Positions 7,296-64,000 of a stretch of 64,000 nucleotides of DNA are shown here, piece by piece; position 1 is the first letter of the stretch, and each line of letters opens with the position of its first letter. Below the pieces are notes generated by a model, which ran no database searches, was not told the origin of the DNA, and saw nothing but the letters and a program-made list of their open reading frames with translations. This stretch comes from Podarcis bocagei (lineage: Eukaryota), in assembly GCA_964188305.1 (NCBI GenBank), contig OZ076887.1, one strand, 5' to 3'. The position numbers were made by a program, and so were the translations under genes.

Positions 7296-7386
7296 TCATT
7301 CCATCTCAGGTCACACACACTCAACCCCCCCCCCCCATATTGCTTCAGAATCTTTTCTCTGGAGATGCCATATTTGAAATGAATTG

Positions 7387-7713
7387 GTAAAGGTAAAGGG
7401 ACCCCTGACCATTAGGTCCAGTCGCAGATGACTCTGGGGTTGCGGCGCTCATCTCACTTCATTGGCCAAGGGAGCTGGCGTACAGCTTCCAGGTCATGTG
7501 GCCAGAATGACTAAGCCACTTCTGGCAAACCAGAGCTGCACATGGAAACGCCGTTTACCTTCCCGCTGGACGTGCTTTCGAACTGCTAGGTTGGCAGGAG
7601 CTGGGACCGAGCAACGGGAGCTCACCCCATTGCGGGGATTCGAACCGCCGACCTTCTGATCAGCAAGCCCGAGGCTCTGTGGTTTTAACCCACAGTGCCA
7701 CCTGCGTCCCAGC
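7387..7713 (-). mobile_element. Sauria SINE (near full length, internal deletion)
   Basis: Reverse complement of the 8602 copy; (ACCTTT)n tail; 11-bp TSD GAAATGAATTG at 7376-7386 and 7714-7724. Confidence 0.93.
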
Positions 7714-8601
7714 GAAATGAATTGAGCTTTCTATTAAAGGCTCCAGTGATAATTTTCTGCCCAATTAAGTTGTACTGGAGATTATTTGTATACATTTCAA
7801 GTGGAAAAACACACATTTTCCTAACTTATATGATTATTTAATTCTGTATTTTGTATGTGTACTAAAGATCAACACCATCTCTATAGCCACTATGGCAGAA
7901 GACTAAAGACATACATTTAATAGTGGGTCTCCAGTTACGTACATGAAGAGTATTCAAGGTTGGGGCAGGGGAATTCAAACCCAATCTGATAGGTGAAAGG
8001 TGACAAAGCTTAGGAGGAGCCAGTTTCAATTAATTACAGAGATATTAAGTCAAAGATAAGTACTGCAGGTGAGGAGAGTATTGAAAGAAAGAGAGAGGTT
8101 AAGACAAGACAATAGTATCTTTGACATGTAGCTACATCAGGTTACATTCAGACTCGCAAGGGATACAGAGTCTCTATTTGGGGATGCGGTATCAACTGTA
8201 ACAAGGGATCAATATTTTGGTATTAACTGTTGCATAATAATTTTCCAGTTTTACAAGATGATGTGCATCTTGATCATTCCTTGCTTTCAGGTGTTCATTG
8301 GGCTATTTTTATGTTACATTTAATTGTTTTTATTAGTAGCACAGAAATTTAGTAGCTTTTTGCATATTTTCTATTAGCTACGTAAAACTATTTCCACTAG
8401 CAGCTCCCCTGTCAGAAGGAAAAAAGAAACAATTGTTTTCCAGAAGCCATTTCTTCATATTAAGAATGAGAAAAACTGCAGACTTTTTTCAAATTAGCAG
8501 GCGTATGACTTAGTCTGGTAAGAAAGGGAGTATTAGTATTTATATATTACAAAGTTAACTCTGTTGACCGGTGCTGAATAATTGTATAGGCCTGACTGAT
8601 C

Positions 8602-8954
8602 GGGATGCGGGTGGCGCTGTGGGTTAAACCACAGAGCCTAGGACTTGCCGATCAGAAGGTCAGTGGTTCGAATTCCCACGACAGGGTGAGCTCCCATTGC
8701 TCAGTCCCTGCTCCTGCCAACCTAGCAGTTCAAAAGCACGTCAAAGTGCAAGTAGATAAATAGGTAACACTCTGGCGGGAAGGTAAACGGCGTTTCCGTG
8801 CGCTGCTCTGGTTTGCCAGAAGCGGCTTAGTCATGCTGGCCACATGACCTGGAAGCTGTACGCCGGCTCCCTCGGCCAATAAAGCAAAATGAGCGCCGCA
8901 ACCCCAGAGTCGGTCACGTCTGGACCTAATGGTCAGGGGTCCCTTTACCTTTAA
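8602..8954 (+). mobile_element. Sauria SINE (full length)
   Basis: tRNA-like head with A box (TGGCGCTGTGG) and B box (GGTTCGAATTC); ccctttaccttta tail; 10-bp TSD CTGACTGATC at 8592-8601 and 8955-8964. Confidence 0.95.
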
Positions 8955-9554
8955 CTGACTGATCAATAGAAATGAACAATAATGGAAATGTCTAGCTGCA
9001 AAAAGATCACATTTAAGAGTACATTATATTGCCTGGGTTAGTGCAAATGTGCAAGCTACCAGGGAGGAGGTGGCTGCTTCACAACTGCCATTTCATTTTG
9101 CAGCTGCACTGCAGCTTGCTTACTATGTTGTCTGAACCTGGGCTTGTGGTTTAGCTCTCCCAGATGAACCATGAGCTACAAGTCTAGAAAAAAACCTTGG
9201 TTACAGCTGGATGGAAATCATGAGCCTGAGTTTGGATGGCATGCTAAGTCAATGCATGGCTTAGCTCAGTGCTGCACAGCAGCACAACAGCTGTGATCTC
9301 TTGACAAGAGCCCACATGCTCTGCATTCGCACTAAGCCATAATCTATGCACTAAGCACAGCTATGTGGGTTGTAACAATAGCGCCATTTGTGTTCAATAC
9401 AGCTGAAAAATCCTGAGTTAAAATATATTATTTTCCCTTAAAAGTTCTTGTTATCATCAGGTGGTATAGTTCCTGTATAAATTGCATGGATAATGTTTTC
9501 TGCTTGAAATCTATATGGTCATAATTCTGTTGGGGGTAGGGATACAATTAGGTA

Positions 9555-14536: not shown

Positions 14537-14673
14537 NNNNNNNNNNNNNNNNNNNNNNNNNNNNNNNNNNNNNNNNNNNNNNNNNNNNNNNNNNNNNNNN
14601 NNNNNNNNNNNNNNNNNNNNNNNNNNNNNNNNNNNNNNNNNNNNNNNNNNNNNNNNNNNNNNNNNNNNNNNNN
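14537..14673. other. Assembly gap (N run), probably a collapsed GT-rich microsatellite
   Basis: 137 Ns preceded by gtgtgtctatgtgtatgtatgtctgt. Confidence 0.95.
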
Positions 14674-17811: not shown

Positions 17812-18199
17812 CCCCTTAACTCAGAGTTTAGAAATGTAGAATAGAATTTAGGTGAATCATATGAAGGGGGAGAAATTAACAGTTCAATTCCATCCATGTT
17901 TATTCATAAGTAAACATGCTTAGGATTTCAGATGACATACAAATCCCTCAACATGTTTACTCGGCAGTAAACCCCAGCGAGTCAACTGAAACTCATTTCA
18001 GAGTATGCATTCATGTAGCCAATCCATGTTTACTCAGAAGTCAGTCCCACGAAGTTACCTGGGAGCTTTCTTCCTGCAAAGGAAGCGCGCTGTGAGGCTG
18101 CAATCCTATACACGCTGACGTGGAGCTAGGGAAGCAAACAAACCCTGTGCAGCTCCGGAGCGGCTGCCTTCCGAGTAAGCATGCATAGGATGGGGCAGC
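17812..18199. repeat. Cluster of ~4 decayed ~85-bp hairpin repeats abutting the promoter
   Basis: Repeated catgtttactc(a/g)g(a/c)agt motifs and caatcct...aggat termini. Confidence 0.55.
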
Positions 18200-18645
18200 G
18201 AGAAGCGCTGCTAATCGGTCACGACGCGAGATCGCAAAACAAAACAGAAAACACGGACACCCAACAATGCAATGGGAAAAAAGAAAAGAGAACGGCAGCG
18301 CGAAACTTAATACCTTCTGATGAAATCTTCCCCAAAGGAACTGAGGCTTGCAACTCCTTCCTGCCAAACTGTCTTTTAAGAAGCAGAAAGCGTTTGGTCA
18401 CCCTAAGGAGTTAAAGCTAGAGTTAAGACACAGCCGCGCTTTGGAAGCCCTTTTGAAAACGTTGCATCGTTTATATCTGCGCGTTCTCACTTGTCGGTTA
18501 TTATTATTTCTTCTCCCTCTGCCTCCCCCCGCCCGCCCTTTCCCCGGTCCCTCCGCCCGTCTCTACCTGCCGAGCTCCGCTCAATCTGTGCAGCCTCTGC
18601 TCTCGCCGGCGCTGATTGGCTGACGCCCTACCAATCCGCTCTCTG
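18050..18645 (+). promoter_or_regulatory. ESRRG: CpG-island proximal promoter of ESRRG
   Basis: Sharp rise in CpG/GC relative to the AT-rich flanks. GC boxes (ccccgcccgccc ~18526-18538, ctccgccc ~18551). Inverted CCAAT (ATTGG 18615-18619), half-CRE TGACG (18621-18625) and CCAAT (18631-18635) directly before the gap that holds the exon. Confidence 0.8.
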
Positions 18646-18914
18646 NNNNNNNNNNNNNNNNNNNNNNNNNNNNNNNNNNNNNNNNNNNNNNNNNNNNNNN
18701 NNNNNNNNNNNNNNNNNNNNNNNNNNNNNNNNNNNNNNNNNNNNNNNNNNNNNNNNNNNNNNNNNNNNNNNNNNNNNNNNNNNNNNNNNNNNNNNNNNNN
18801 NNNNNNNNNNNNNNNNNNNNNNNNNNNNNNNNNNNNNNNNNNNNNNNNNNNNNNNNNNNNNNNNNNNNNNNNNNNNNNNNNNNNNNNNNNNNNNNNNNNN
18901 NNNNNNNNNNNNNN
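18646..18914. other. Assembly gap (N run) covering the TSS, 5'UTR and most of the first coding exon
   Basis: 269 Ns. Confidence 0.99.
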
Positions 18915-18921: not shown

Positions 18922-21900
18922 GTAGGTACCTTTCTTCTTATTTCCCCCTTCCTTTCCTCTTTTTTATGTTATTAAAAAATAATAATAATAACCCTCTTCC
19001 TACTTTTATTCCCCCCCAGAACCCGGGGCTTGGGGAGAGCATAATAATAGCAATAGTATTAGAGCGCTGAATGCTAGCGTTGTTTCAGGTAATGCTTTCC
19101 GGGTTCTGTGTGCATGATTGGGGCTGCTTGTGTCTTCCGTCTTTTGTGCCCGGCTTTATCTGCTAATTCAGTAAGTGGGAGAATTGTTCTCTCTCTCTCC
19201 AACGTTACCTTTTGAGTCGCAACGCAAGCGGTGCGACTGTCACAGAAGGGGGGGGGGGTGAGGGAAGCACTCCCCCCTCCCAAAACAGCTGTGTGAGTGA
19301 CAGTCACTTCTTATTCAGGTACTAAGAATAGGCACTTGGCACAAATGCAGAGTGAATTGTCTAAATAGACATTTCAGAAAGACACATTTATCCCCCCCCA
19401 CTTTCCCCCCTCCCCAACAGAGTTTAAGAAGGACGTATTCTGAGAACAGGATTTAAATATTTAGGACCTTTTCAGTTAGATATTTTGATCTTTCTGGTGT
19501 TTATAGCTATGCATAGTTAGGAGGGGGAATCAGCCCAACTGTTTAATCCCACTTTAAGGATAGTGCTCTGTAATTAAGTAGAACGTAACGTTCCAGTCAT
19601 TTAGTGACAAATCGGTCTATTAGAGAGCAAGGGAAGGGTGTGTGCATGTGGCACTTCCTGAGCCAGTATTTTGTTTCAATTGGAATATAGGGTTTTAATG
19701 TTTTTTTTTAAAAAAATAATCATTTCCGCAATTGGTACTATTAATTTATTTATCACACACAATAAAGTACTGTAGATGCTTCGTGTATTCAGTACATTTA
19801 ACATGCCTCTTAAAGGCACATAGTTTAATGCATGTTTTCTCAGCTCTTATCGGAGAGCAGAGCAAAGAGTGGGGAGATTCCAAATGCAAATTTGACAGCC
19901 TAGAACTTGGAGAGCTTGTAAACTTAATTCTGGGCTAAATACTACGCACTGTGGAAGCTGTCAGTTGACTCAGCCCTGGACAGAATGCATAGTGTGGCTG
20001 TACTAGGAAGTGACAGTGTGTTGTGGGTACATGCCCACTAGCTGTCCATAGTGTCTGCATATTATTTTGGTGAGTTGCAATTAAGTCAGAGTTGTGTGGG
20101 TTTCTTAAAGTGCTTTAGACGTTCAGAAATAATATAGACAATAAAAGAGCTTGCCAATCGGAAACTGGTATAGTGTGTGTGCGGGTGGTAAGAGGCAGGA
20201 TTCCTCGTTCACCTGCAGAAGAAGGTAAATAAACAGTAGTAGCATGCTCACTGAGATACGGTTTATAGATCAGTACTCAGTAAGTTGATGTGCAGTGTGG
20301 TCTAAAATGTCTTAATCTGTGCATAAGTGCAGTTGTCACTGTTCCAAGTTGAGATGGGTGGTTTTCTTTGGTGGGGGAAGTAGGAGGAGGATAGATTCTA
20401 AAGTTAGGACGATGTTCTTTTTTTAAGGAGCTTTCTTGAATTTACCTTCTTAGAGCTAATTTGAATGATTAGTTTTGATAAGCCGCTTAAAGTAGATGCA
20501 TTTAAATGAAATCGGGGCACGTGTCTTTTTGGCTCTGGTGGAAGATTCAAACTATTCTCTCTCCCCACTACAATTAGCACTCTTCTCTCCCCCCCCCCTG
20601 CCTCTGTTAAAAGTCTTCCAGATGCAAGGCTAGGTGGATCTGTGGTTTCGTGGGCAGGCAGAACTCTAATGCACTGCAACACATCTGTCTGTATGTCTCA
20701 ATTAATAAACCACACCGCCTTACTTGCTATTAATATTGCCAGTAATTGTATTTTTGTTTTGTGGCATATAATGCACACCAAACTACAAAGGCAGCTCAGA
20801 GATTAAATAAAAGTAGTGGACTACTTCTAGAGCTTGCACTTTATTGAGTGTGTAATGTGGTGGTGGGGAGGGAAGCCAGGCTAAAAACTGACAGAACATT
20901 TGGGGAGCACATAGACATCTGCCTCACTGACATTAGGTATGCTTTGATATCTGGATAGCGCATGTTAAAGAATGCAAAAACTTAAAGCCAGCTGCAAACC
21001 TTGCTATTGCCTTTTCAGCAAAACCAGTAATACTAATAATTTCAAATAGCAGTTAATAATGGAACAGATGCAACAAATATAGTTGCTGATTTACGCGTGT
21101 GTTTGTCACTTTAATTGTTCTAAATGAAACGGTGTGCTCATAATGCAAAATCTCAAACCTCTGATTAAAATGTAACATTGACTAAAGGATTAAAGAGCGG
21201 ACTTAATTTTACTGACTGTTTTAACAGTTGTCACAGCTGTTGGAAGAAGGAAAGGCAATTGAAACACTCCAAAAAAGGGGAGGGGGAGGAACTAGCTTCG
21301 TAAATTTAAACATGATCTCTGAATGCCAGGCATAGAGAGGCAAATAGATTTGTGACTTCAGATATCTTCTCTGAGCTGTGTACGTTTACCTCTGTAGCTC
21401 TGTCCGTTTCATGAATTTGAACCCTCGACCTCTTCCACACTTCCCCCATTAAAATACAACAGGACTGAAATGAGGCACAGCTAAAGTGAATGTCACAGTG
21501 TACATTATTTTAGAAACCAACTTGTTTTGTAGTAAATGTGATATGCCAAGAACTGAAACTTAGGATGGATGGCTAAAATTTTAATAGTGAACACTGATGT
21601 CGGAATTGGGAGACCAAAGATACTTGAGGGCTTTGAAAGATTGTTTACAGATTTCACTGTCAAAAACAGCATAAATGTGAGAGCTACTTTGCTGGAGTCT
21701 TCATTTTCTTCTTTGTCAATATCACTTATTTAAATGTGTGTTACTTCCTCCCTCCTTTTATTGCATAGGTCTTATTTCCAGTAAAATTTGATCTGGAAAA
21801 TCTATGCAATATTTGCTGTGGGGGAGGGGTAGCTGATAATTAATAAGAAGAAAGTTAATGCTCCTTATTATGACTGCAAGGGTAGACTTCTTGAGGTGAG

Positions 21901-23686: not shown

Positions 23687-23688
23687 TT

Positions 23689-23764
<76 letters not shown>

Positions 23765-23767
23765 TCC
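23687..23767. repeat. (TTTC)n microsatellite
   Basis: Direct reading. Confidence 0.97.
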
Positions 23768-32518: not shown

Positions 32519-34880
32519 TATGTTCTTGCGTTCAAAGGAACTCTGGTGTCACTCCCGTCTTGCCGAAGTTTGAGGGTAGGGTGGGAGAGCAGAAATGGTA
32601 TTGTTAGGGGCAAGACAGCTTGAGCCATGGGACTCAAAAGAACCAGGGACCTGAAATGGCATGTGAAGGGTATAGAAACTACATTCTTTACTTCCAGACC
32701 AGTATAAACTAAAACGAAAACTTAAAAGTAGCAAAACTACAGTCTTCAGACTGGACACGTAACGTAGGAAATGGAGATAGATAGGAATGCAGTCTCTTAT
32801 GTATGACTTTGATAGTTTTAATATCCTAATGTTATAAATAGGCTTTGAAAAAGAAATCTGGTGCTGATTTTTTTTAAGTTATTTTAGTGTCTATATTTTA
32901 TGCATCAGGACACAGCTTTAGAAGTATTATCTTAAACAAAAAGACAGGACTTGGTATGGGAATTGAATAAAAGTGGATCTTAGTAGTTGTATAGTTGTGC
33001 TAAGGGTTACCAGCTTCCACTCTTCCCTTACCCTCGGTTGCATTGCAGATGAATAAGGGGGTCTACATTTTTGCCTTTGTTGTTATCTAGAATATCAATG
33101 TGACAATTTCTGAGTTGGCTTCATTGCTCCCCAGTAATAAATTGCTATTTTATCTGACCTGAGCAATTTAGTCTCTTAGTAAAATGTGTATTTAAGGTGA
33201 GAGAGTATTAATAAATAGTCTATGTAATTTCCTCTCAGCACATGAACGTCTAAACTGGCTCACTTTTCTTGACAACCTCAGAGAAACCACACACACACAT
33301 GGCACAGTATTCATTTGAGCACCTGAATATATTGAGAGATTTTGGAAAGTGCCCAGCTATCTTGTGTAGGTGCTTGGTAACAAAGCAGCTAGGTTTTCAA
33401 AATTGCTGTGCACCCTGCAGCTCCCATTGAGAAAAGTAGGGGATGCTGCGTTTCAGCGTCTTTGAAATTCTGACCCCAATTGTAGCAGCTGTGCACTTTG
33501 GTGAATTATGGTATCTAGATTCAATATAGCTAATTTAAAAGTACAGCTCTTTTCCCACCAAGCAGAAACATTTTCTGCTGCCTTTTTGAAAACGGCATTG
33601 GGGCATAATAATTATTTTTCAGATACTATGTTGTCCTGTTTCCCCCTGTGTGCATGCATGCACAAACATGAATGGGCATGCTTCTGAACATAATTATGGT
33701 TAAACAGATTTATTTGAAGCGATAATAATTTCAGATATAAAGGTGCTGTTAAGTCTTCAATCCTGAATCCACTTGCCAGTAAATCACATTGAATTTAGTG
33801 GATTTATACTTTTGAGTAAGCATGTATAGGATTGCGCAGTACACATGTGGCAGAATTAGATTAAAAATCAAGTACAATTTATCAGAGCATATGCTATGTT
33901 AAAGTAGTCACATTTCTGAAGTGCATTTATGATTTTGGAGAAAAAACTTATACATTTCATAGAACACTTAAACCAAAGGTTCATTGATACTGTTCTTCTG
34001 TCACAAAGTGATATCCCAGAAGCACAGTGACCTGTATAAATGTGTGCATGATTGTGTCCCTATTCCCTTCAAAAAGTGAACACCACACAGGCACAACTGA
34101 AATTTTGAAAGCCCCACTGGGAATGTTATTGAAGGGAATGATATAAATCCCTTAAATAACTAGAATTTGGGAGAAGAGGACAACTTGAAGTTTATTCTTA
34201 TATTTCGAGCCCCATGAAGGCTTGAAATTATTCAGAAGGTATTTTATACAAACACATATCTTAAATGCTTGTGAAATAGTAATGGCAATAATATTTTCTG
34301 TAAGCTAAAGCATTCTGCTAAAAATTGTTGCTTTTAATCACATTGCCTCACCTAAACCCGTGCTCTTTACTGGTTAATGCACTGAAAGTCTTCCCATGCC
34401 TCAAATTGTTTCTCTATTCAAATTGGAGGAAGGAGGTGATAGCACATATAAATCGACTTACTCCTCCATTTTGGGTGCCATGAGCACATCTGCATTTCTG
34501 GACTGGGGTTAAAATATGGAACCAAGACCCACTTACTTTAAAAGATATCCCCCCTCCCCACCAAATAAAATACATGTTTGCATAGGTTTTATTTGATTAT
34601 TAAGCTGTAATGTGGTTAGGTAATAGTACTACTTAGATGATAATAAATAGAGTATATAGTTTGTTTGTAGCCACAGTCCTTTGCACTGAATATTGGATGT
34701 TGTACTGAAAAGTTCATTTATTTTCATTAATGTCCCTTTGGTGGGGAGCATGGGAAAGAAGTTACCATATGGAAAGACAGCCTAAAACATCCCAGTGAGT
34801 ACTGTATATATGCAAGCAACCTGGAACTTATTTGGATACAGTATATAAATAGTATCTGTAAGTTTTCTTCCCTGAGCGAC

Positions 34881-35113
34881 ATACCTCGGTTTAAGAAGAG
34901 TACGATTTAAGAACATTTGGTTTACAAACTCCGCAAAACCAGAAATAGTGTCTTGGTTTGAGAACTTTACCTCAGTCTAAGAATGGAATCCAAATGGTGG
35001 AAGGGCACTGGTGGCGGGAGACCTCATTAGGCAAAGCGCACCTTGGTTTAAGAACGGTTTTGGTTTAAGAACGGACTTCTGGAATGGATTAAGTTCGTAA
35101 ACTGAGGTACCAC
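34881..35113 (+). mobile_element. Tc1/mariner-type MITE, subfamily B, both termini eroded
   Basis: Reverse-complement similarity to 10896-11120; the terminal CAGTG/CACTG and TA are missing or incomplete. Confidence 0.85.
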
Positions 35114-35619
35114 CTTGGAGACTATGACATGGGTTTATGCACACCCTTCTGATTCCCAGGTACTTAGTCTGAATATCAACCACTATGACTGCTATTTGGG
35201 TTTTCTAACCATAGGATCTCCTGCTATCACAAGTAGATATCCCCTAATATATATTTGTGTTAATATTTTTATAACATCCTGCCCTTCCTTCTGAAGTAGC
35301 TCAGGGCAACAAGTATAATCACATAGCCTGTAAAAATATCCTATATTACCATATTGGGTTGGAGAAAATTCTTGACAGAAATTGACCCCATATCAATTCT
35401 CTAAAAGTGTATGTGCAGGCACATACAAATGTGCACACTGAACATCTTATTTTAGGAAGAGTTGTGTGTAACTTGAAAGTCTGTATATTGCATTGGTAAC
35501 TTGGGTTAACCAAATAAATATTTTACTTTCCTATGTTTTATTTTAAAGGTAATTGGTACCTGATATCATCACTGGTTATAGCTGATGAAATCATTCTTGA
35601 ACTCTTTCTTTCTTTTTTT

Positions 35620-35817
35620 GCCTTGACATTAAAAGTGAACAGGGCCTTAAAGCTTCAGGGCCTTGACCAGTGCTCCTAAGGGTATAAAAGTTTGCATGCT
35701 TATCTGAAGCTTATCCAAACTGCTTAACCTCTCTGGCCTCAAAATCGGTCTGGAAATCCTAGGAGAGCAGACTGTCTCGCGAGATCTTAAATAGAACTTT
35801 CTGTGTGCCAGGTCAGA
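35620..35817 (+). promoter_or_regulatory. Candidate internal TATA promoter and short non-coding first exon of ESRRG
   Basis: TATAAAAG at 35683-35690; GCCTTGA/GGCCTTAA/GGCCTTGA sites at 35620-35666; TCTCGCGAGA at 35775-35784; CAG|GTCAGA donor at 35811/35812. Confidence 0.45.
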
Positions 35818-36143
35818 AATATATCAAGAGTGTTAAATAGGATTTCAGTGATTTTTCCTTCTCTTCCCATCCTCACAGCTTTCTCCTTCTTTTTTGCAAA
35901 ACATTTGAGTACACATTTTCTCCAAGTGCTGTTGTCAATTTAGATCGGATCATTATCAATTTAGATAATTATTAATATAGACAAACCCTGTCAAATTCCT
36001 GTTTTATGCAATCCAAAATGGTTCTTTAAATCTGTAAGTTGCACAACCTTGCAATATTTCTTACAAATTATAGCAAACACTTATTCTGCTGTTCTGACCA
36101 ACTAGAATTAGTATTTATTTAGTGAGCTTAGAGCATGAGATAA

Positions 36144-36490
36144 AGGTAAAGGGTAAAGGGACCCCTGACCATTAGGTCCAGTTGTGACCAACTCTGGGGT
36201 TGCGGCGCTCATCTTGCTTTATTGGCCGAGGGAGCCGGTGTACAGCTTCCGGGTCATGTGGCCAGCATGACTAAGCCGCTTCTGGTGAACCAGAGCAGCG
36301 CATGGAACACTGTTTACCTTCCCGCCGGAGCAGTACCTATTTACTTGCACTTTGACGTGCTTTCGAACTGCTAGGTTGGCAGGAGCAGGGACTGAGAAAC
36401 GTGAGCTCACCCCGTCACGGAGATTCGAACCGCCGACCTTCAGCAAGTCCTAGGCTCTGTGGTTTAACCCACGATGCCACCCGCGTCCCT
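36144..36490 (-). mobile_element. Sauria SINE (full length)
   Basis: Reverse-complement copy; TSD ATGAGATAA at 36135-36143 and 36491-36499. Confidence 0.93.
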
Positions 36491-39110
36491 ATGAGATAAG
36501 TTACTGCATCATAATTACGGGATAGTGACCAAACTTTAACGACACTTTCTGTATAGCAGGTTTTTAATGACACAAGGTAACTAGTGTCTGCATTGGTGTA
36601 AGAATGGTGCACTTCAGAGGACAAAAAGTGTATAAACTCCTGGGGACTGGACAAATAGATTGTACCATTGAAGTGTAGGAATGTGAAAGAAAGAAAAGTA
36701 GAAGGAAAACAAATAGAAAATTAGTTTGAATTTTCTGTCACCTGTGCACAAAAACATGCCCATATTGTTCATTTCCCATTATATGAAGAAAATACTTTGT
36801 ATGTACTGTATTACTGTACCCATTGATTCCAGTAATTTTAAGACTCCAAATTTGTACTGTAATAAGATTTCCATAGTATGTATCTCAAAGCTGGAAGTTA
36901 GGCTAAATTCAGTACACCTAAAACTGTCCTTGTCTTTAGTGGGGATTTAGGGGTTGCATGTAACAAGGAATATGGCTTCAGGCAGAAACTCAGAACAGTT
37001 TTTTAAGAAATCAGTTGACATCACCAAATGCATAATGGTTTGCGAATGGTAAAATGGAGTTGGAAACCACAGTAAGAAGCAGCTTTGTTTGTGCATCATA
37101 TATTTCAGTGAATATTCGTGCTCTAGGAATGGCTTATTTATCACCTCCTATATCACACCTGTTTCTAAGCCATGTGCCAGTAAAATATATATATAGGGTG
37201 GATGAGGGCTTCTTTGAGAAGATCGATACATCCCATGATTATTATTATTATTTTTTAAAGAAACTGCATTTGGTTAGAAAATGCAAGTGAGCAGCTGGCT
37301 ATTTATTTAACTCATTCCTATAGTTTTGTACAAAGATTCTCTTCCTCCTCCCCTTCCCCCTTTCTTGCATAGCACTTTCTGCTACACTGATGATAATGTA
37401 CCTGGAAGGAAAAAGCAGTGCAAGCCGAGGCAGCCAGCGTCAGACAGGGCGGTCTGCCATCTGTCCCACCTGCTGCATTCATGTGTCCATCTGGTTCCTG
37501 CAATTGCTCATTGCAAGCTTCAACAGAAGAATGTTCAGCCTGAAAAGGAGGCAGTGTGAATTATTTAGGTACCTCTAGTGTAAATAAAGAAAGGGAAATA
37601 GAAGCTGGGGAGTTGAGGGCTATGGATGGCTTAGGAGAGGCTGCGAGCCTCTCTCACTCCTGGGTGCTTTGGAATGCGTTAATGCATGAGAGCATTTGAT
37701 TTGCATATAGATTTAGATGTATAGATGATTACAAAGCCAATGAGTTTTATCTAGATTTAGATAGCCTGGTTTGCCCATAAAATATAGCCTGTTTTCGGGA
37801 GGAGAACCTTTTGGGACTTTTAGCCTAAGTGGAGCTGATGAAATCTAATGCTTAGAAGCATTAATTTAGCAGAAATAAAGTATTTCCCTTTTTAAGAGCT
37901 TTTGGCGCCCTTTGTTAACCAAGAGTTTATAAGTGCTAGAACGTCTTGGGAGCTTTGTACAACATGTGCTGTTTTCAGACAATCATGACTACGTATATTG
38001 TAACATTCATTTGGAAAGGAGTATATTTTTTCTGCTTGTCCATGGTAGTTTAAAATGTTTTATTTCTGCCCTTCCCATTTTTAGACAGTTTTCTATTAAT
38101 AGATTTACAAGTGCTTTACATTAAAATAAATAAATCCAGGTACAAAATTGATTTTTAATGGTAAAACATACCTTCCATCTGGATATGGTTTGGATGTATG
38201 TACATATATGTAATAGAGACTACTTACGCAGACAAGGGGAAAGTGAAGCACACTAGCAAAATAGGTAAAGTCAATATATTTTTGTCTGCTTTTAGAATTC
38301 AGAAAGAAATCTTGGATGACTTAAGGTCACCTTTATTACGAATGCTTTTTGCCCTCCCCCTTAAAAACACCCCTTATAAATATCAATTGTGTATATTTGG
38401 CATGTTAGTTTTATCTGGAATGCTTTTTAAAACACAACTCTTCAATTTTTTAATACATACAAACTTTGACTTTACGTAATGCAATTTTTATGACACAGAA
38501 AATGAAGAGAGCCCAGGTGTCAAATTTCTTTGAGAGGGAAGTATTTTCAATTCCTCAGCAGTCTCCACCCTAGTCTAATTTTATTTTACTTTTAGCATGA
38601 AATCAGAACTTTCATAAGATGTATCTTTAAAAAGGTCTAGCAGTAGGTATCATTGTTTTGCCTAGTTTTGGATCTAGGAAAGAAAGGGACTCAGCATCTT
38701 GCTATCTGAGGTGCCTAACTGCTTCTCTAATATTTGCATGAAATTCGGCTGCAGCCTTCAAGGGGATTTGAGTGGATTGGATTCTTTAAGGTTAGTCCCT
38801 GTCAAACCTATTAAATTCAATTCTCATGCAAAACTATTTTAATGTCTTTTAAAAGCCAATAACCACTATTAGGACGGCATCATATACTTGCTGTAGAATA
38901 TTTATGGTACTAGATCATTCTATTGGCATGTGGAATAAACCAATAATCCACTTGCATTATTCCAAATTAAGATTCTATATTGTTTACATTCTGTGCTGGG
39001 CACCTTTTAAACCAGTTTTATCAGTAAAACATATGAATACCTGCTATTGGGTTTATATCACAAAAGCCACACATGTTTTTTTCCCCTACACTGCACTGAA
39101 TTGATGTACA

Positions 39111-39392
39111 GTGACGGTGTGAGCTCCTGTTGCTCGGTCCCAGATCCTGCCCACCTAGCAGTTCGAAAGCACGTCAAAGTGCAAGTAGATAAATAGGTAC
39201 TTCTCCGGCGGGAAGGTAAACGGCGTTTCCGTGTGTAGCTCCGGTTCGCCAGAAGCGGCTTAGTCATGCTGGCCACATGACCCGGAAGCTGTACGCCGGC
39301 TCCCTCCGCCAGTAAAGCGAGATGAGCGCCGCAAGCCCAGAGTCGGTCATGATTGGACCTAATGGTCAAGGGTCCCTTTATCTTTACCTTTA
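39111..39392 (+). mobile_element. Sauria SINE, 5'-truncated
   Basis: Matches the 8602 copy from just after the B box to the tctttaccttta tail; head absent; no clear TSD. Confidence 0.9.
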
Positions 39393-63836: not shown

Positions 63837-64000
63837 GCTTCTCTGCAGAATGTCAAGCAAGGATCGACACATTGATTCTAGCTGTTCGTCATATATCAAG
63901 ACGGAACCATCGAGCCCCGCCTCCTTGACGGACAGCATCAATCACCACAGCCCTGGTGGCTCCTCTGACGCCAGTGGGAGCTACAGTTCAACCATGAATG
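63837..64000 (+). CDS. ESRRG: ESRRG coding exon (N-terminal A/B domain), 5' part; continues beyond the window
   Basis: Pyrimidine tract plus ttcAG acceptor ending at 63836. Frame from 63838 reads [54 protein letters not shown], which matches the ERR-gamma N-terminus as I recall it (human [55 protein letters not shown]). Short-isoform ATG at 63850. Not in the ORF track because the frame runs off the window. Confidence 0.97.

Follow-up and report, generated by a model that had tools for sequence, protein, structure and literature searches.

A CGCG palindrome, a TATA box and a donor-like site in a presumed lizard ESRRG intron: probably ordinary, CpG-poor intron DNA

Mammalian ESRRG reportedly uses many alternative 5'-untranslated first exons (Heard et al. 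2000), and the ERR-alpha promoter is autoregulated via ERR elements. In mammals, the cores of MIR repeats have often been reused as enhancers.

The CGCG element has been described as an element of unmethylated, TATA-less CpG-island promoters, with transcription starts within 50 bp (PMC6192621). Outside islands the element is more methylated, and methylation abolishes its promoter activity, while one unmethylated copy suffices for transcription of a reporter (PMC6192621). In the PRDX1 promoter a TATA box and the CGCG element cooperate (PMC6192621). Squam3, a squamate SINE family, is devoid of part of the CORE domain found in other SINEs (PMC7983390).

Here, we examined positions 35620-35817 of a 64,000-nucleotide stretch of lizard DNA (the window), where an earlier note had proposed a hidden internal ESRRG promoter with an ATG-less first exon. 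We consider it probable, at roughly 60%, that these letters are non-functional, ordinary CpG-poor ESRRG intron DNA, partly SINE-derived, carrying a palindrome that arose by chance.

Motifs at 35620-35817 and the gene around them

The window consists of AT-rich vertebrate DNA in which squamate SINEs occur. Reading the letters directly, we located every motif listed in the earlier note at the position given for it, and the landmarks proposed further downstream were likewise in place. The features on which the argument turns are as follows.

35620-35626, plus strand: GCCTTGA; the minus strand reads TCAAGGCA, an incomplete SF-1-type site that does not match YCAAGGYC
35640-35648 and 35656-35664, plus strand: two copies of the direct repeat CAGGGCCTT, with starts 16 nt apart, both ending in CAG/G
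35659-35666, minus strand: TCAAGGCC(C), the candidate nuclear-receptor site
35683-35690, plus strand: TATAAAAG, a consensus TATA box (matches TATAWAAR)
35691-35697: TTTGCAT, 7 of the 8 bases of the octamer ATTTGCAT, directly 3' of the TATA box and overlapping an SphI site at 35694-99
35715-35721, plus strand: CCAAACT, Inr-like (YYANWYY), with A+1 at 35717
35724-35741, plus strand: TTAACCTCTCTGGCCTCA, matching the CORE-domain block of the Ther1/MIR and Ther2 SINEs, one base short
35775-35784: the perfect palindrome TCTCGCGAGA (CGCG element, BANP-type motif), overlapping NruI and BglII sites
35809-35817, plus strand: donor-like CAG/GTCAGA, exon-side G at 35811 and GT at 35812-13, with an unfavourable C at +3
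63837-64000, plus strand: start of the presumed first common coding exon of ESRRG, with acceptor AG at 63835-36, g-ctt-ctc-tgc-aga (..LLCR codons of the long isoform) and ATG at 63850

The palindrome lies 92 nt 3' of the TATA box and 27 nt 5' of the donor-like site. Restriction sites carried by the stretch include SphI, HindIII, BglII, NruI, KpnI and AvrII. The exon at 63837 is taken to be the first common coding exon of ESRRG (ERR-gamma) on the basis of its N-terminus; a check of this identity in Atlas, PDB and NCBIfam returned no match.

The proposed first exon, 35713-35811, does indeed contain no ATG. The distance between its Inr-like A+1 and the TATA box, counted from the first T, is 34 nt, where the usual spacing is about 28-33 nt. 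If such an exon were joined to 63837, an in-frame TAG at 35792-94 (frame read by eye) would leave only the product that begins at ATG 63850; the joined exon could thus be untranslated only and would yield the short isoform, in keeping with what the note had suggested. Its tentative link to a human alternative N-terminus, on the other hand, is not supported, as stops occur in all three frames of 35700-35830 and the long-isoform peptide has no match there. Across the whole window, the long-isoform N-terminal peptide, which was used as a lead only, gave no significant match. A coding reading of 35760-35811, or a long-isoform N-terminal exon, was sought and none was found.

Motif frequencies and CpG context

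The exact palindrome TCTCGCGAGA occurs once in the 64-kb window. A first-order Markov model predicts 0.0024 exact copies in 64 kb, which amounts to about 64 in a genome of 1.7 Gb, and shuffled sequences gave 0.15 with one mismatch allowed. It is the sole listed motif that is rarer than chance. The TATA box TATAAAAG was observed 3 times in the window where 5.3 are expected, and YCAAGGYC 4 times where 8.0 are expected. A TATAWAWR motif followed, 40-300 nt past the predicted start, by an equal or better donor was found at 6 distinct places on the plus strand and 6 on the minus strand of the window. By our arithmetic, a 9-nt direct repeat has odds of about 1 in 13 in any 200-nt stretch, and we estimate the chance of a 99-nt interval devoid of ATG at about 1 in 6. 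The donor CAG/GTCAGA scores 3.8 against 8.8 for the consensus, which places it in the top 1.4% of GT sites according to a rough matrix; its weak point is the C at +3. Since the set of motifs was picked after the palindrome had been seen, multiplying these frequencies would overstate the case. The main lesson of the stretch is how weak a case for a promoter is made by short consensus motifs that have been picked out by eye near a single rare palindrome.

Of the sites described in the note as SF-1/ERR-type, a near-consensus SF-1-type half-site is present at the place named: TCAAGGCCC matches the SF-1/LRH-1 consensus YCAAGGYCA at 8 of 9 positions and the ERR element TNAAGGTCA at 7 of 9. Neither a full ERR match nor a full SF-1 match was found, and such sites are not enriched. 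The further suggestion of nuclear-receptor feedback found no support, because TCAAGGCCC is off-consensus to this extent and the first site, GCCTTGA, is incomplete; the YCAAGGYC count given above, half of that expected, points the same way.

We also assessed the CpG content around the palindrome. Positions 35600-35799 have a GC content of 0.42 and a CpG observed/expected ratio of 0.34, while the ratio for the whole window is 0.28. Thus, of the claim that a promoter-type CGCG element is present, the exact consensus at 35775-35784 holds, but its surroundings do not agree: there is no CpG island, and a TATA box is present. Since TCTCGCGAGA is not surrounded by a CpG island and the element is silenced by methylation (PMC6192621), this is a setting in which the motif is expected to be silent. 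We infer that an isolated CGCG palindrome of this kind would be methylated in both germ line and soma. The palindrome together with its flank had no match in a metagenome scan.

The only CpG-rich block of the window that is not a SINE lies at 18050-18645 (GC 0.51-0.52, CpG observed/expected 0.88). It ends in ATTGG (18615-19) and CCAAT (18631-35), directly 5' of a run of N at 18646-18914, after which a donor-like TAG/GTACCT follows at 18925/26. With its extension to 18930, this block probably represents a conventional CpG-island promoter inside ESRRG, with NF-Y boxes and a first exon; it is a far more conventional promoter candidate than 35620-35817.

An exon-like block was also seen at 37373-37568. 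Its TAG acceptor, in the top 0.4% of AGs, follows a pyrimidine tract that is very strong, and the block ends in TAG/GTACCT, nine letters identical to the donor-like site at 18925/26. Possibly it is an untranslated ESRRG exon. Word searches with a 50-aa exon piece and with the 62-aa ORF of this block at 37.4 kb, over a length range that excludes full-length proteins, returned no relatives.

CORE-SINE relationship and other repeats

The block at 35724-35741 was compared with SINE consensus sequences taken from the supplement of PMC7983390. All 17 specified CORE bases match exactly; nowhere else in the window does the pattern occur, nor did any of 100 shuffles contain it. The block TTAACCTCTCTGGCCTCA is the most conserved CORE piece of Ther1/MIR and Ther2, and it is the only one to which the test was applied. 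SINE descent of this core block is likely. Both flanks of the core resemble Ther1 at about 60% by eye, including TGTCTCGCGAGATCTTAAAT set against GTTGTTGTGAGGATTAAAT; if that alignment holds, the palindrome would be mutated SINE body. Beyond the core, a SINE origin is only a lead. A 31-nt motif of the MIR 3' (L2-derived) part scored 15 and ranked 1979 of 12656 windows, which is not significant. By eye, no tRNA-like head with A and B boxes, tail or target-site duplication was seen in 35600-35720 or past 35830, and neither blastn nor nhmmer found further copies of the stretch in the window. As Squam3 is without part of the CORE, the lizard copy would be older and Ther-like.

Several other repeats and low-complexity features were recorded in the window. 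One CpG-rich squamate SINE family is represented by four copies, 80-88% identical, at 36130-36620, 8596-8955 (minus strand), 39111-39392 (minus strand) and 7386-7710 (plus strand); together they account for all CpG-rich blocks of the window other than that at 18050-18645. The region 34870-35110 is repeat-like: GGTTTAAGAAC units recur in it, an inverted repeat of 25 nt is present (34968-92 / 35085-109), and it is probably another lizard transposable element. A second run of N, 137 letters long, lies in the intron at 14537-14673, and repeated short matches in a self-comparison mark a tetranucleotide microsatellite at 23687-23765. Capture of a promoter by a Pack-type hAT element was considered and rejected, as no terminal inverted repeats flank the stretch. 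No known RNA families were found in 34500-37650.

Weighing the explanations

According to the preferred reading, 35620-35817 would be plain intron, lying some 28 kb 5' of where the first common coding exon begins, and an old CORE-SINE (Ther/MIR-type) insertion would have given rise to at least its centre. Chance would have brought together there a consensus TATA box, an SF-1-type half-site close to consensus, a donor of fair quality and the perfect TCTCGCGAGA, and transcription would not regularly start at the stretch. This agrees with TATA and receptor sites at or below their chance frequency, with the six or so equal TATA-donor pairs on each strand, with the CpG poverty, the CORE match and the repeat-filled flanks, and with the better promoter candidate in the same intron. 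Against it speak the rarity of the exact TCTCGCGAGA and its place between a perfect TATA box and a top-1.4% donor, as well as the PRDX1 precedent of a TATA box with a CGCG element (PMC6192621); moreover, the SINE part of the reading is drawn from one 18-nt block.

Sequencing runs were searched with the 501-nt stretch as the query. None of the runs listed as containing it was recorded as RNA, which is consistent with intron DNA. Six DNA-type runs contain 80-94% of its words. A further 14 small runs, from six organisms and with library type unrecorded, contain 4-30%, the value for one of them (X1) being 30%. These small shares may reflect expression of some 170 nt, a locus sampled by restriction-site or capture libraries, or relatives that are 3-10% diverged. 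Exact look-ups of the ORFs near the site found nothing on record.

It is unlikely, in our view, that the stretch acts as an intronic cis-regulatory element (an enhancer or similar), possibly derived from the CORE-SINE, which would be bound by NR5A/ERR-type receptors, POU factors or BANP and would not start transcription. What suggests it is a locally GC-richer block that unites TCAAGGCC, the octamer-like TTTGCAT, the CGCG palindrome and the CORE-SINE core; receptor-type sites, however, are no commoner than chance.

We regard as improbable the model closest to the original proposal, a TATA-type, tissue-specific alternative promoter. Transcription would start near 35713-35717; an ATG-less exon ending at 35811 would be spliced to 63837, either directly or by way of 37373, and translation from ATG 63850 would give short ERR-gamma. 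The consensus TATA box, the Inr-like site at a distance of 34 nt from it and a top-1.4% donor would suit this model, as would the interval devoid of ATG, the in-frame TAG at 35792-94 ahead of the junction, and the exact CGCG element. The many untranslated first exons reported for mammalian ESRRG and the 30% of words present in run X1 may be added on the same side. However, no run containing the stretch is recorded as RNA, all motifs except one occur at chance frequency, and the CGCG element sits in a non-island, TATA-containing setting, unlike its described class. The C at +3 of the donor is unfavourable, and a 99-nt exon would, by our arithmetic, give about 15% of the sampled words and not the 30% seen in X1. 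If the model were true, a CGCG element would be active outside a CpG island, and a gene already known for its many alternative first exons would gain another, which would be useful, not surprising.

A more specific version, which we consider quite improbable, would place a lizard-specific ESRRG promoter on the old CORE-SINE, with the TATA box and a BANP-type CGCG element at about +60, inside a CpG-poor first exon, driving short ERR-gamma. If true, it would be a rare case in two ways: a TATA box and a CGCG element would cooperate away from any CpG island, and a reptile promoter would derive from a SINE.

Least probable is a cassette untranslated exon that would run from an acceptor CAG/G at 35642 or 35658 to the donor at 35811 and be joined to an upstream first exon, e.g., at about 18.9 kb. 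Two CAG/G sites do lie upstream of the donor and, by our arithmetic, such an exon, with a length of about 169 nt, would account for about 30% of the 31-letter words, as in run X1. However, the sequence upstream of both sites is purine-rich (pyrimidine fraction 0.42, a value that 75% of AGs match or exceed), so that they are poor acceptors with no pyrimidine tract. The likely genuine acceptors have fractions of 0.89 (37372) and 0.84 (63836), and the cassette exon is thus unlikely.

We also compared the stretch with known systems. The ERR-alpha autoregulatory promoter shares with it the idea of feedback through extended half-sites, but the lizard site reads AAGGCCC and not AAGGTCA, and it is a single, unenriched copy. 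Like the 5'-untranslated first exons of mammalian ESRRG, the candidate exon is positioned upstream of the first common coding exon, with the short isoform as the expected product.

With the Ther1/MIR and Ther2 CORE-SINEs the likeness is that 35724-35741 equals the CORE consensus CTTAACCTCTCTG(T/G)GCCTCA minus one base (PMC7983390), whereas no recognisable tRNA-like head, LINE-derived 3' part, tail or target-site duplication was seen with the lizard block. The palindrome TCTCGCGAGA is identical to the 10-nt consensus of CGCG/BANP-type promoters (PMC6192621, PMC2920758). Its known active copies, however, belong to housekeeping genes, where they lie in CpG islands that are unmethylated and mostly TATA-less, and the starts are at most 50 bp away (PMC6192621, PMC2920758), while the lizard copy lies in a CpG-poor intron, beside a TATA box and about 60 nt 3' of the proposed start. 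The PRDX1 promoter is CpG-rich and experimentally active; what it has in common with the lizard stretch is a TATA box and a CGCG element on one strand.
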